A stretch of 5,880 nt of DNA from Octopus sinensis (Eukaryota): contig NW_021829828.1 in assembly GCF_006345805.1 (NCBI RefSeq), positions 1 through 5,880 on the forward strand, given 5' to 3'. Both the position numbers and the translations under genes were made by a program. Positions 1 through 5,880 of the stretch are shown piece by piece (the stretch's first letter is position 1; each line of letters opens with the position of its first letter). Under the pieces are notes generated by a model. The model worked only from the letters and a program-made list of their open reading frames with translations. It was not told where the DNA came from and searched no databases.

Positions 1-10
1 TACTTCGAGG

Positions 11-237
11 GTGGATTTGGTAGACAGAAACTGAACGAAACTCGTAGTATGTGTGTGTGTATGTGTTTGCTTGTGTTTTCGACCCCATAAGCTAGTGGTT
101 CGGTGAAAGATATTGATAGAATAATTAACAATCTTAAAAAATAATTATTACTGGTGTGGATTTTTTCGACTAAAATTCTTCAAGGCGGTGCGCCAACATG
201 ATCGCAAGCTAATGGTTGAAACAAGTAGAAGATAAAG
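11..237 (+). mobile_element. Decayed copy of the SINE family also present at 3688-4086 (head lies outside the window or is lost)
   Basis: 11-35 gtggatttggtagacagaaactgaa matches 3812-3836 at 24/25. It is followed by the same order of modules: (TG)n, ggttcgg..aaga..gatagaataa, tcgactaaa, aaggcggtgc.cca.catg, tgaaacaagta.aaga. Confidence 0.85.
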
Positions 238-238
238 G

Positions 239-431
239 ATACATACATACATACATACATACATACATACATACATACATACATACATACATGTTTAGAT
301 AGATACATACATACATACATGTATGTTTGCGGACATACAAACAAATATGCATTAATACACACATGCATGCAAGCATACATACAAACATACATTCATGCAT
401 ACAAGCATACATGCATACATTCACATGCATG

Positions 432-463
<32 letters not shown>

Positions 464-870
464 CATACATTCATACTTACACGCAAACATATATGCATAT
501 ACATTCATACATGTATCCATACTAACATACTTACAACCATACATACATATACATACACACATGCATCCATACATACGAGCAGACATACATACAAGCATAC
601 ATGCATACAACCATACATACATACACACATACATACAAACATACATATACATACACATACATACACACACATACATTCATACACACATACATACATCCAT
701 ACTTACATACATACATACATGCATGCATACACATACACATATCCATCAATACATACATATACTCATAGACACACATCCGTCAATACATACATACACACAT
801 GCATACATACATACATACATACATACATACATACATACATACACACATGCATACATACTTACATACATAC

Positions 871-901
<31 letters not shown>

Positions 902-1107
902 CATGCATACATACATACATACATACATACATGCATACATACACACACACATGCATACATACATACATACATACATGCATACATACATACATACATGCAT
1001 ACATACATATATACATGCATACATACATACATACATGCATGCATGCATACATACATACATACACACACACACATACATACATACATACACACACATACAT
1101 ACATACA

Positions 1108-1141
<34 letters not shown>

Positions 1142-1207
1142 CATACATGCATACATACATACATGCATACATACATACATACGTACATACATACATGCAT
1201 GCATGCA

Positions 1208-1241
<34 letters not shown>

Positions 1242-1814
1242 CATACATACAAGCATACATACATACATATATACATACATGCATACATACATGCATACAT
1301 AAATACATACATACATATATACATACATACATGCATACATACATACATACATACATATATACATACATGCATACATATATATACACACATACATACATAC
1401 ATGCATACATACATGTATACATACATACACACGCACATACATACACACACACATACATACATACATACATATATACATTCATACATGCATACATACATAC
1501 ATATATACATGCATACATACATACATATATACATACATACAAGCATACATACATATATACATACATGCATACATACATACATGCATACATATATACATAT
1601 ATACATATATACATACATACATGCATACATACATACATATATACATACATACATGCATACATACATACACACATACATACATGCATACATATATAAACAC
1701 ATACATACATATATACATACATACATGCATACATATATACACACATACATACATACACACATACATACATACATACATACATACACACATACATACATAC
1801 ATACATACATACAT
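239..1814. repeat. Very long imperfect (ACAT)n/(ATGT)n tetranucleotide microsatellite, ~1.58 kb
   Basis: Directly visible. Variant units are GCAT, ATAT and ACAC. Purest at 239-292 and ~790-1814, more degenerate at ~321-790. Confidence 0.99.
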
Positions 1815-2051
1815 GAGGGGGTGCCACTTGATTTTGACCAATGCCAGTGCGCGTTTCTTCTATTCAAGCAATACGGATGTGCTTTCCCGATCCTACTTTG
1901 GGCCTTAAACGCTTTTGAACAGATGTGGCAACGATGGGTTCCTCTTACAGCAGGTGTTCAGAGAGCTTACCCCCCACAGGGAGGCATGTTTTCATTCCAT
2001 ACCGGATTTTTTGTTGAGTGCTTTGTTTTGTTTGTATAGGATCCGGTCAGC

Positions 2052-2329
2052 TATATTACACAACATATTACTCAAAAGGCGGCGAGCTGGCAGAATCGTT
2101 AGTACGCCGGGCGAAATGCTTTGCGGTATTTCGTCCGCCGCTGCGTACTGAGTTCAAATTCCGCCGAGGTCGACTTTGCCTTTCATCCTTTCGGGGTCGA
2201 TAAATTAAGTACCAGTTACACACTGGGGTCGTTGTAATCGACTTAATTCGTTTGTCTGTCTTTGTTTGTCCCCTCTATGTTTAGCCCCTTGTGGGTAATA
2301 AGAAAACATATATTACACAACATATAACT
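2052..2329 (+). repeat. Target-site duplication flanking SINE copy A (2052-2072 and 2309-2329)
   Basis: tatattacacaacatattact vs tatattacacaacatataact: 20/21 identical, first 17 bp perfect. Confidence 0.85.
2078..2308 (+). mobile_element. Near full-length tRNA-derived SINE (copy A) with Pol III A/B boxes
   Basis: A-box-like tggcagaatcg at 2088-2098 and B box gttcaaattcc at 2152-2162. Central gcctttcatcctttcggggtcgataaattaagtacc resembles the Meta-type SINE domain (recall, unverified). A-rich end, flanking direct repeats, and homologous minus-strand copies at 2346-2697. Confidence 0.9.
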
Positions 2330-2345
2330 GAGATGTTAAATGTCC

Positions 2346-2494
2346 TTTTCTACTCTAGGCACAAGGCCCGAAATTTTGGGAGAGGGGGGGGGCATTCGAT
2401 TAGATTGAGTCTAGTATGCAATTGGTACTTAATTTATCTACCCCGAAATGATGAAAGGCAAAGTCGATCTCAGAACGTAAAGACAGATGAAATA
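2346..2494 (-). mobile_element. 5'-truncated SINE (copy B), same central domain as A but a different 3' tail
   Basis: 2423-2494 is the reverse complement of A's central region with a 16-nt deletion. 2346-2400 (ttttctactctaggcacaaggcccgaaatttt...) is a tail unlike that of A or C. Confidence 0.8.
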
Positions 2495-2495
2495 T

Positions 2496-2697
2496 CTATT
2501 TCTTTATTACCCACAAGGGGCTAAACATAGATGGGTCAAACAAGGACAGACATAGGTATTAAGTCGATTACATCGACCCCAGTGCGTAACTGGTACTTAA
2601 TTTATCGACCCCGAAAGGATGAAAGGCAAAGTCGATCTCAGAACGTAAAGACAGATGAAATACCGTTAAGCATGTCGCCCGGCGTGCTAACGTTTCT
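2496..2697 (-). mobile_element. SINE copy C, same subfamily as A, B box deleted and extreme 5' end missing
   Basis: The reverse complement aligns to A from the head (ctaacg/cgttag) to the tail (ccccttgtgggtaata..gaaa), with roughly 90% identity by eye over 2496-2636 vs 2169-2305. Confidence 0.9.
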
Positions 2698-2717
2698 TAT
2701 TTCCTTATTGCCCACAA
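2698..2717 (-). mobile_element. 20-bp remnant of another A/C-type SINE 3' tail
   Basis: tatttccttattgcccacaa vs 2497-2516 tatttctttattacccacaa, 18/20. Confidence 0.55.
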
Positions 2718-2906
2718 TGAACCCAGGTTCAGAACCACTGGCAAACGTATGCATTTGCCACGTACATTGTAAATGGAACGAGTGATAGATTCATCGACAC
2801 CACAGCAGTACAGCTGCCTGTGTTTCCTATTTTCATGATCCTTTGCTGCAGGGAATACAGTCATCAACGTCTTTTCTTAGGATCTATATCCTTTTCTTAG
2901 TATATA

Positions 2907-3306
2907 CTAGCAGTATTGCCCGGCGTTGCTCGGGTTTGTAAGGGAAATAACTATATAAGCATTTTTAGAGAGTTATAGCCAAAAAATAGCAAAAAAATGC
3001 ATTAAAAATGAAAAACAAATGATGGTAAATTTTTTTTAAATCGTTGACTCATCGTAGACATTTTTAGAGAGTTACTTCCCTTATATAATAGCGAAAAAAT
3101 GCATTAAAATGGAAAAAAATGATGGTAAATTCTTTTTTAAATCGTAGACTCATCGTAGATGCGCGCTAATACCCAGAAGGGCTCGATATGAATCACGACT
3201 ATAAGATACCCGGTTTTGGTTAAACTGCACCGCAAAATGTGGGAGTAGTTAGGAAGCTAAATCGGAGGAGACAGACAGCACACAACCTTACTTTTATATA
3301 TAAAGA
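2907..3306 (-). mobile_element. Non-autonomous Helitron (rolling-circle element), 400 bp
   Basis: On the minus strand it begins TC (3306-3305) and ends CTAG (2910-2907). A GC-rich 16-nt hairpin cccgagcaacgccggg (2934-2919) lies 12 nt from the end. It is inserted between host A and T (a2906|t3307) with no TSD. All of these are canonical Helitron hallmarks. Confidence 0.85.
2960..3159. repeat. Two tandem ~100-bp units inside the Helitron (2960-3058, 3059-3159)
   Basis: Both units start catttttagagagtta, contain aaaaaatgcattaaaa and aaatgatggtaaatt, and end gactcatcgtaga. Confidence 0.92.
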
Positions 3307-3687
3307 TATTCTGTTCACTGCTTCCATGTTGACGGGTACGAATATGTAAACCCCTATAAAATGTAGGCAGTTTCGCATCTGCTCCTGTAAGTTCAAAAGA
3401 TAGTCGGTACATTCAGGGAAGCTGAGCAATGTGAGTAGTTGGTGAGACACGTTTTTGCCGGACAAGCAACTAATCACACAGATCCGTGATAAACGTAATA
3501 TGGCTCATAGTGAACGTATCGTGTTATCCCGGATCAGCCATGAATGAATAAGTGATAAACGGGAGTACATGCATTACCATAAAATGAAGCATGTAAGGGA
3601 AGTACTTCAGTTGATTAATAACAAGCTCTTGGAACTGACGGGTATTTATTTCGTCAACTCTGGTATTATTTGGGCATAAAAATATGT

Positions 3688-3859
3688 GGCAGGAGTGGCT
3701 GTGTGGTAAGTAGCTTGCTAACTAACCACATGGTTCCGGGTTCAGTCCCACTGCGTGGCATCTTGGGCAAGTGTCTTCTGCTATAGCCCCGGGCCGACCA
3801 ATGTCTTGTGAGTGGATTTGGTAGACGGAAACTGAAAAGAAGCCTGTCGTATATATGTT

Positions 3860-3894
<35 letters not shown>

Positions 3895-4086
3895 TTGTCC
3901 CCCTAGCATTGCTTGACAACCGATGCTGGTGTGTTTACGTCCCCGTCACTAAGCGGTTCGGCAAAAGAGACCGATAGAATAAGTACTGGGCTTACAAAGA
4001 ATAAGTCCCGGGGTCGAGTTGCTCGACTAAAGGTGGTGCTCCAGCATGACTGAAACAAGTAAAAGAGTAAAAAGAGTAAAGAGTAA
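3688..4086 (+). mobile_element. Full-length tRNA-derived SINE (copy D) with internal microsatellite and (GTAAAAGA)n-type tail
   Basis: A box tggctgtgtgg at 3696-3706, B box ggttcagtccc at 3739-3749. Homologous to 11-237 and to the tail at 4137-4207. Short tandem tail at 4059-4086. Has a small deletion in catg[gccacagtcaaatg]act relative to the 4137-4207 tail. The central part resembles Deu/Nin-type SINE domains (recall, unverified). Confidence 0.9.
3850..3894. repeat. (TA)n(TG)n microsatellite internal to SINE D
   Basis: Directly visible. The equivalent position in the 11-237 copy also has (TG)n (49-65). Confidence 0.95.
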
Positions 4087-4093
4087 TTAAATA

Positions 4094-4136
4094 GCGCAAG
4101 GATGACACGCAAATTCGTGAAGCGTTCCATATTTTT
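4094..4136 (+). pseudogene. RNU6: 3' fragment of U6 snRNA (nt ~65-107), retrocopied
   Basis: gcgcaaggatgacacgcaaattcgtgaagcgttccatattttt matches the conserved metazoan U6 3' end including the U5 tail (43/43 vs the human U6 sequence as recalled). It lacks the 5' stem-loop, ACAGAGA box and AGC triad, so it is not a functional snRNA gene. Confidence 0.95.
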
Positions 4137-4207
4137 CTAAAGGCGATGCTCCAGCATGGCCACAGTCAAATGACTGAAACAAGTAAAAGAGTAAAAGAGT
4201 AAAAGAG
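4137..4207 (+). mobile_element. Isolated 3' tail of the D-family SINE (or its partner LINE) fused to the U6 fragment
   Basis: ctaaaggcgatgctccagcatggccacagtcaaatgactgaaacaa(gtaaaaga)3g aligns with D 4027-4086 but lacks D's deletion and has different substitutions, so it is an independent copy. Confidence 0.9.
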
Positions 4208-4292
4208 CGCATACCAGATGATGCTACACGAGTCGGTTTCCGCCATTTATCACCAACCTCTAATAATTATATAAAACAGTAAACCCCCTCTT

Positions 4293-4586
4293 GTGGAGGC
4301 ACATGGCCTAGTGGTTAGAGCAGCGGACTCGCGGTCGAGAGATTGCGAGTTCGAATCTCAGACCGGGAAATGTGTATGTTTTTGAGCGAAACACCTAAGT
4401 TCCATGCGGCTCCGGCAGAAGGTAATGGCGAGCTTCTGATGAATCTCTCGCTACAACTTTCTATCACTCTTTCCTCCTGCATCTAGCAGCTTACCTGTGA
4501 CAGACCGGTGTCCAGTCCAGGTGGGGAACCTAAACGCCAATGAAACCGGAGTCAGGAATGGCTCGAGAAGTAACAAACAACAACAC
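4293..4586 (+). mobile_element. tRNA-derived SINE of a third family (copy E) with (AAC)-rich tail and TSD
   Basis: Perfect A box tggcctagtgg at 4304-4314, B box gttcgaatc at 4349-4357, tRNA-like spacing. Tail aacaaacaacaacac. Flanking repeats aaaccccctctt (4281-4292) and aaaccctctctt (4587-4598), 11/12. An internal T5 at 4379-4383 would terminate Pol III. Confidence 0.85.
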
Positions 4587-4957
4587 AAACCCTCTCTTAT
4601 CCAGTACTTGGCCGCTGGGGCGCGTTTTTTTTTTGCGGTACAAACAGTATCTTCGACTGATCGCTGACACTAATAAAACGCAAATCAATCAGCGATGAGC
4701 ATAGAGCGTAGAGCGTGCCGCATTTACACGGATCAGTGATAACTGAATCGCTGGTTAGCTAGGCTACATGTACTTGTGTTTTCGTAAAAGTGCAAGATGC
4801 CTTCTCATAATATTTATATTATACACAATTTACCCATAACTGCATATATTTTAAGATTTATATTCAGCAACTTAATATTCATTTACATCTACCTTAAAAA
4901 TGCGTTCCTTGAGTTAGTAAATTTTTAACGACAAACGAGAAGCTTCAAATCCTGTCA

Positions 4958-4966
4958 CTCTCTTTC

Positions 4967-5015
<49 letters not shown>

Positions 5016-5029
5016 ACACTCACTCACTC
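4958..5029. repeat. (CT)n microsatellite grading into (CACT)n
   Basis: Directly visible. Confidence 0.95.
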
Positions 5030-5038
5030 CCTCTTTCC

Positions 5039-5170
5039 ATATTATACACACATATATATATGTATTATATATTATATATCTATATATATATATCTATATA
5101 TTATAAACATATATAAGGTAGTAAATATAATACATATACATATATATATATTATATATATATATAATATT
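5039..5170. repeat. Degenerate (TA)n / AT-rich low-complexity tract
   Basis: Directly visible. Confidence 0.9.
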
Positions 5171-5490
5171 ACGGGAAGCTTTATGAAAATAACAAAAGAC
5201 GAAGGCAGGTGGAAAACAAACGAACAATTGTATTAGTATGGCGCTCAGGAATATAAATAAAACAAGTCTTTAACGTTTCGAGCCTACGCTCTTCAACATA
5301 AGATACACAGAGAGAGAAAAACCACAAGAAGAAGGAGAGAAAAAATGCGTGCAGTAGCTAACGCATCAACATGGCGATCTGATTTCGGCCATAGGTCAAA
5401 GACCAAACATTAAGACTCGAGAGCGAAATAAGGGGAAGATAATAGGGTTGATAAATGGGTTGAGGGACCAGCTAAAAGTGCGTGGGAGGG
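5171..5490 (-). mobile_element. Probable interspersed-repeat fragment, Penelope-like terminal (pLTR-type) sequence
   Basis: The minus strand has gaagagcgtaggctcgaaacgt, the hairpin+GAAACGT pattern typical of Penelope-like element termini. The block is complex sequence bounded by microsatellites. No RT or GIY-YIG coding is recognisable and the boundaries are approximate. Confidence 0.45.
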
Positions 5491-5497
5491 GTCTGGA

Positions 5498-5532
5498 TGT
5501 GTGTATATATATGTATGTATGTATGTATGTAT
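5498..5532. repeat. (TG)/(TA)/(ATGT)5 compound microsatellite
   Basis: Directly visible; (atgt)5 at 5511-5530. Confidence 0.9.
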
Positions 5533-5588
5533 ATTTTTATATATATTTATTTAATATTAATAAACACACATACGTAATATAATATATT

Positions 5589-5658
5589 ATACATACATAT
5601 ATACATATACATACATTCATATACATACATACATACATACATACATACATACATACAT
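5589..5658. repeat. (ACAT)n microsatellite, opposite orientation to 5511-5530
   Basis: Directly visible. Confidence 0.95.
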
Positions 5659-5880
5659 GTAGATATAATTAGATTATGTACGATTTATATATGGGCGTTA
5701 TGATACTGTAACAATCCCACGAGCAATACGTTAATAGATGCAGAAATACACGAGGAATAATAATAATAACTCAGCTAAACTGCATTAATTTTCATGAACT
5801 ATCAGTGCAGTGTCTACATTAATTCAAAGATATCCTGACACTTATGATAAATATATAATTCTTTTCTAACGCGTTTCTGT

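Follow-up and report, generated by a model that had tools for sequence, protein, structure and literature searches.

A probable U6 snRNA retrocopy fused to a SINE/LINE-family tail in the genome of Octopus sinensis

Chimeric retrocopies that join U6 snRNA to a LINE are known from mammals, where U6 is fused to L1 (Buzdin 2002; Garcia-Perez 2007; Moldovan 2019, PMC6789731). In these chimeras the junction lies exactly at the oligo-U end of a U6 that is usually full length, and the L1 part is variably 5'-truncated, reaches the 3' end of the element and carries poly(A). Long target site duplications (TSDs) surround the whole unit. Their origin is attributed either to template switching or to ligation, in which U6 ending in a cyclic phosphate (U6>p) is joined to an RNA with a 5'-OH. 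The 3' end of mature U6 is typically a run of five U carrying a 2',3'-cyclic phosphate, and in human cells RtcB ligates this end to 5'-OH RNAs before retrotransposition (PMC6789731).

A survey of U6 beyond placentals places such chimeras outside the L1 system and describes "Group IV" snRNA pseudogenes (Doucet et al. 2015, PMC4476161). In platypus, U6 copies bearing TSDs are fused either to L2 or to Mon-1, a SINE that depends on L2, and in almost all of these chimeras the U6 is 5'-truncated and precedes a short stretch of L2. Among 40 platypus chimeras, 72.5% have TSDs of 1-9 bp, consistent with priming on the 3' simple repeat. Anolis U6 is joined to L1, L2, RTE and AnolisSINE2, opossum and turkey provide less certain RTE and CR1 cases, and the authors come to regard the making of U6 chimeras as general to non-LTR retrotransposons (PMC4476161).

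Further systems share single aspects of this arrangement. SINEU families carry an snRNA fused 5' to a retroelement tail, probably through a template switch, and form families of many copies, with master copies and with a head derived from U1 or U2 (Kojima 2015, PMC4494074). CR1 elements and their SINEs possess a hairpin that binds the reverse transcriptase and an 8-bp terminal microsatellite (PMC4316615, PMC5729268), and in LINE/SINE systems with microsatellite-like 3' ends a TSD tends to begin with bases that match the repeats (PMC6007223). In octopus, expression or recent activity has been reported for LINEs of the RTE type (PMC9115989). A limited literature search found no report of U6 chimeras in cephalopods or other invertebrates, which does not prove their absence.

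We analyzed a stretch of 5,880 nt of Octopus sinensis DNA, hereafter the window (contig NW_021829828.1, positions 1 to 5,880). It is dense in repeats: an (ATAC)n array extends over 1.6 kb, three SINE families are represented by at least six copies between them, and there are several simple repeats. Within it, the initial annotation had singled out a fusion of U6 to a retroelement tail, and its coordinates all proved correct. The unit comprises 114 bases on the plus strand (4094-4207), in which a 43-nt U6 3' end in sense orientation lies 5' of a 71-nt tail of a SINE/LINE family, with a spacer of zero. The features on which the analysis turns are the following.

4094 to 4136, plus strand: 3'-terminal 43 nt of U6 snRNA, Rfam RF00026 positions 63-105, 5'-truncated and with its native TTTTT end
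4137 to 4207, plus strand: 71-nt 3' tail of the local SINE family or of its putative partner LINE, from alignment to SINE tails, RNA fold and an exact octamer run
4142 to 4161, within the tail: hairpin 1
4163 to 4176, within the tail: hairpin 2, followed by a spacer
4183 to 4206, within the tail: (GTAAAAGA)3, followed by a G
4093 to 4098, no strand: left copy of AGCGCA, candidate TSD and 5'-junction microhomology, overlapping the first five U6 bases
4206 to 4211, no strand: right copy of AGCGCA, candidate TSD and 3' priming microhomology, its first two bases overlapping the tail end
3685 to 4088, plus strand: full-length older SINE of the same family, its tail without hairpin 2 (14-nt gap) and with degenerate octamers
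1 to 236, plus strand: diverged third copy of the SINE, 5'-cut, from alignment, retaining the hairpin-2 segment

The left part of the unit had been read as the last 43 nt of U6, ending at its U5 terminus, and both a covariance search and a gene comparison agree. Rfam RF00026, named in the initial annotation as the means of confirmation, matches 4093-4136 on the plus strand with 34.4 bits (E 7.2e-6 over the whole window, 2.7e-7 over the local stretch); the alignment covers model positions 63-105 only, and its last bases are the terminal UUUUU. Its shortfall from the RF00026 gathering score of 44 reflects the confinement of the match to the 3' 40% of U6, not a poor match. The segment does not qualify as a full-length (~105 nt) functional U6 gene, which would have the 5' stem-loop, the ACAGAGA box and the internal stem-loop: the 5' 62 nt, 60% of U6, are absent. 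The Rfam search of all 5,880 nt found no second RF00026 copy in the window. A homology search with a minus-strand ORF of 41 aa that spans the chimera (4087-4212) gave five matches, all of them ORFs across ordinary U6 genes and none reaching into the tail. One of the loci so matched provided a full-length U6 gene for independent comparison, from unrelated contigs of eukaryotic origin (L042-L044). The 3' end of that gene is identical to 4094-4136 at 43 of 43 positions. It is preceded by T in the full gene and by A in the window, so the U6 homology begins at 4094. The four CpGs of the U6 part are all intact. Exact-sequence look-ups of the 41-aa ORF and of a 75-aa minus-strand ORF across the 5' junction (3903-4130) returned no record.

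The right part belongs to a SINE family of which the window holds two more copies, and alignment to both bears out the reading of a 71-nt retroelement tail that follows U6 without spacer and ends in (GTAAAAGA)3. The tail is 91% and 87% identical, over two ungapped blocks, to that of the full-length SINE (~3685-4088, tail at 4027-4087), and 76% identical to that of the diverged copy (tail part 172-236), which served as the outgroup for the other two. It reaches the 3' terminus proper to the family, native repeat included; the 8-nt unit is present three times in exact form, and both other copies carry it in degenerate form. The 71-nt RNA is predicted to fold at -17.4 kcal/mol (z -3.9; 0 of 200 shuffles as stable) into two hairpins followed by an unpaired spacer and the three octamer repeats. 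Tail-specific LINEs have 3' recognition modules built in this way, from a hairpin and a short terminal repeat, and the predicted stable hairpins directly upstream of an 8-nt tandem repeat recall CR1/L2-type modules (PMC4316615, PMC5729268); the resemblance is one of architecture only.

The two parts meet at TTTTT/CTAAAGG, with the letters CCATATTTTTCTAAAGGCG or GTTCCATATTTTTCTAAAGGCGATGCTCC at the junction; the tail letters that follow U6 are CTAAAGGCGATGC. In the other SINE copies, CTAAAGG is preceded by ...TCGA. These bases are missing from the chimera, hence the junction contains neither spacer nor overlap, and there is no microhomology. The T5 run at 4132-4136, a Pol III terminator, sits between U6 and tail. 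Poly(A) is absent from the unit, whose five CpGs and octamer repeats are all intact. The identities of the U6 and tail parts are far beyond what chance can account for, unlike the flanking repeat to which we now turn.

AGCGCA is present at 4093-4098 and 4206-4211, overlapping the start of U6 and the end of the tail as the initial annotation had claimed, but it carries less weight as a TSD than was implied there. Six nucleotides is the longest exact repeat abutting or spanning both ends of the chimera. Allowing any exact repeat in either position, a repeat of at least 6 nt at both ends arose in 3.5% of 20,000 trials in which a unit of this geometry was placed at random in the window, and in 4.0% of 20,000 flank shuffles (p about 0.035-0.04). 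Outside the insert lie only A 4093 on the left, which is not U6, and CGCA 4208-4211 on the right, which is not tail; because AGCGCA overlaps the insert at both ends, no base is unambiguously duplicated. This modestly significant pair speaks in favor of a single insertion event but falls short of proof, the alternative being a blunt insertion with chance identity. The overlap of the right AGCGCA with the tail end, two bases (AG), fits the tendency of TSDs to match terminal repeats (PMC6007223).

Compared with the systems described above, the octopus unit stands closest to those of platypus and Anolis. As in Doucet et al. 2015 (PMC4476161), U6 is in sense orientation, there usually with 5' truncation, and is followed at once by a short 3' piece of a stringent LINE or its SINE, which ends in a simple repeat instead of poly(A); the proposed mechanism is the same, and the candidate TSD of up to 6 bp lies within the 1-9 bp found there. 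The octopus chimera matches their description feature for feature. The differences are a protostome host, another tail family (8-nt GTAAAAGA) and a single locus here as opposed to dozens there. Mammalian U6/L1, which the initial annotation had taken as precedent, is a known case and shares the junction exactly at the oligo-U end, a 5'-truncated LINE part that reaches the 3' end and the two candidate routes to the junction; however, closer non-L1 precedents (L2, RTE and their SINEs) are already described (PMC4476161), and the octopus unit differs from U6/L1 in lacking poly(A), in its 43-nt U6 and in a candidate TSD of at most 6 bp. With SINEU it shares the fusion of an snRNA 5' to a retroelement tail, but it is a promoterless U6 3' fragment, sighted once.

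The fusion was said to lie just downstream of a SINE tail of the same family, and the full-length SINE at 3685-4088 indeed ends about 5 nt upstream. The gap of about 5-6 nt consists of TTAAAT and then the A of AGCGCA, neither U6 nor SINE. The tRNA-like head of this SINE was judged by eye and is not called by ARAGORN or Rfam (E<=1); AAATA at 3680-3684 and 4089-4093 is a possible 5-nt TSD of its own. Where the chimera and copy 1-236 have CG, this SINE has TG. Since the chimera is intact in its CpGs and repeats, the SINE is decayed, and AGCGCA surrounds the chimera alone, the chimera is a later, separate insertion. We also observed a (TA)n(TG)n microsatellite at 3846-3898 inside the SINE, with a TG-rich stretch at the equivalent place (47-80) of the other copy, and it may be a feature of the family. 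The T5 at 4132-4136 is the only run of at least four T on the plus strand from the SINE head (~3685) to 4300; Pol III transcripts begun in the upstream SINE would therefore pass its tail and stop within the chimera.

The remainder of the window contains further repeats. The (ATAC)n microsatellite at 239-1814 (~396 units, 80% matches) begins right at the 3' end of SINE 1-236, as if seeded from the A-rich tail repeats of that copy. A second SINE family at ~2073-2308 on the plus strand (region 2052-2329) is flanked by a 21-bp direct repeat, TATATTACACAACATATTACT and ...TAACT, matching at 20 of 21 positions; so long and clear a TSD, set against repeats of no more than 6 bp beside the GTAAAAGA-tailed family, suggests that the two families have different LINE partners. 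Inverted SINEs of the second family, 2166-2317 and 2488-2639 (also 2396-2471), give two arms of 152 nt with 91% complementarity and 170 nt between them, and if transcribed would yield long double-stranded RNA, the kind of substrate used for ADAR editing in cephalopods. A third SINE type at 4296-4570 follows the chimera at a distance of ~85 nt; its head (GGCCTAGTGGTTAGAGCAGCGGACTCGCGGTCGAGAGATTGCGAGTTCGAATCTC...) is tRNA-like, with no ARAGORN or Rfam (E<=1) call. At 2960-3159, an A-rich unclassified repeat contains two tandem repeats of a 101-bp unit with 87% matches. Simple repeats of (CT)n and (AT)n occupy 4958-5034 and 5052-5169, and after them comes an ATAC-type repeat at 5568-5658, in reverse complement to the stretch ~5491-5559 (69-nt arms, 77% complementary). 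About 100 sub-threshold Rfam matches to miRNA and snoRNA families (mir-297, mir-3149, mir-1277, sno_ZL1 and others) come from the (ATAC)n array and were dismissed as microsatellite artefacts, and scans of the window with ARAGORN and for bacterial promoters and terminators gave nothing useful.

Taken together, the anatomy supports the initial proposal of a chimeric retrocopy made by a non-L1 LINE. We consider the locus to be, probably, a dead-on-arrival retrocopy from one retrotransposition event in which a tail-specific (stringent, non-L1) LINE copied a chimeric U6/tail template, with 5' truncation and with microhomology at the joint. The sequence itself shows the parts, how exactly they abut, and the structure and family of the tail; the single event, the TSD and the enzyme are what we infer. 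In the proposed sequence of steps, a LINE reverse transcriptase that recognizes its own 3' tail, through the hairpins and the 8-nt terminal repeat and not through poly(A), would nick the bottom strand at ...TTAAAT/AGCGCA. Synthesis would be primed on the terminal ...AAGAG of a tail-bearing RNA, the primer end pairing with the terminal AG of the tail, and would copy the 71-nt tail and pass directly from it into mature U6, at the 3' end of the latter. For this last step, a tail fragment with a 5'-OH could have been ligated, ahead of reverse transcription, to U6 with its U5 end and 2',3'-cyclic phosphate; alternatively, the tail RNA could have been broken, and the enzyme, on reaching its end, could have switched to the 3' end of U6. 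A junction without microhomology fits both routes and does not choose between them. Synthesis would then halt 43 nt into U6, and the cDNA end (complement of GCGCA) would anneal to the AGCGCA overhang of the cleaved top strand, giving a 5'-truncated insert and a 6-bp duplication. The pre-insertion site would read ...TAATTAAATAGCGCATACCAGATG... with a single AGCGCA if there is a 6-bp TSD, and ...TTAAATACGCATACC... if there is none. Only priming on the terminal AG and copying from tail into U6 have left a direct trace in the sequence; the other steps are reconstructed. As U6 without the tail would not be mobilized by a tail-specific enzyme, the fusion matters for the presence of the fragment here. 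No promoter accompanies the copy, which we expect to be without function.

Other histories could lead to the same or a similar arrangement. Insertion of the 5'-truncated 71-nt SINE/LINE tail and, before or after it, a separate capture of a U6 cDNA fragment at its 5' edge, for instance as filler in double-strand-break repair, would suit both the statistical weakness of the TSD and a neighborhood with at least six SINE copies in ~4 kb, where adjacent elements are common. It would, however, require the native U5 end of U6 to meet the first base of a truncated tail with zero spacer, would leave the AGCGCA pair around the combined unit unexplained and would involve a tail-less U6 that a tail-specific LINE should not mobilize (PMC4476161); we judge such a pair of events to be quite unlikely. 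A U6 gene with a tail fragment right after its T5 could have given the identical final structure had Pol III, whose T5 terminator can leak, read through and the RNA then been retrotransposed. This presupposes a prior coincidence, a truncated tail inserted exactly behind the terminator, and no evidence points to such a locus, which makes co-transcription very improbable. SINE, U6 and tail might also have arrived together through a double template jump, as for mouse B2-U6-L1; SINE-U6-LINE chimeras are documented (PMC2104539) and the order here is identical. Against this, TTAAAT plus an A separates the SINE tail from the truncated U6, the upstream SINE is more decayed (14-nt deletion, degenerate repeats, CpG to TpG) and 3685-4207 as a whole has no flanking direct repeat: TSD searches, including those on the SINE alone, found only 5-mers, none of them abutting the composite. 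We rejected this tripartite origin and hold it to be extremely unlikely. Finally, the highly repetitive region could have misled the assembly into joining unrelated reads within repeats, but the junctions fall at the U6 terminus and the tail end instead of within a shared repeat, and the 114-bp unit is shorter than a single read; we give hardly any credence to an artefact.

A different question is whether the locus is a one-off. Membership in an amplifying, U6-containing SINE-like family would have a parallel in snRNA-headed families such as SINEU (PMC4494074). Only U6 positions 63-105 are present here, however, and no promoter-bearing head. Animal U6 promoters lie upstream of the gene, and the T5 in the middle of the unit would stop Pol III ahead of the tail. 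Without the 5' 62 nt, without a promoter and with T5 before the tail, such a family is unlikely on structural grounds. No second copy was found in metagenome, prokaryote or viral collections, which apparently do not include this genome: the 41 metagenome matches to a 19-mer across the junction all have ~25% flank identity, which is chance, and a 20-mer of the tail had no match in the prokaryote-genome and viral collections, a result that is uninformative on copy number in the octopus genome. We regard an amplifying family as decidedly improbable. A broader reading, that the locus is one of many and that an active tail-specific octopus LINE routinely makes chimeras of U6, and perhaps of other small RNAs, with its tail, possibly including an amplifying subfamily, is also on the unlikely side, though it can be entertained tentatively.

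Read as a dead-on-arrival retrocopy of a U6/tail template, the chimera is an ordinary example of a described kind in a new host and phylum, and a single locus changes nothing conceptually. If confirmed, it would be a clean protostome case of U6 capture by a non-L1, tail-dependent LINE and would back the generality put forward by Doucet et al. 2015, in which U6 chimera formation is not a peculiarity of mammalian L1. If many such loci exist, U6 chimeras would extend from vertebrates to protostomes and provide a countable marker of LINE activity. A genome-wide census could show whether the junctions always lie at the U5 end, as expected if ligation through the U6 cyclic phosphate is conserved, and could date and measure LINE activity in cephalopods, whose SINE and LINE expansions are of interest for the evolution of their genomes and nervous systems.
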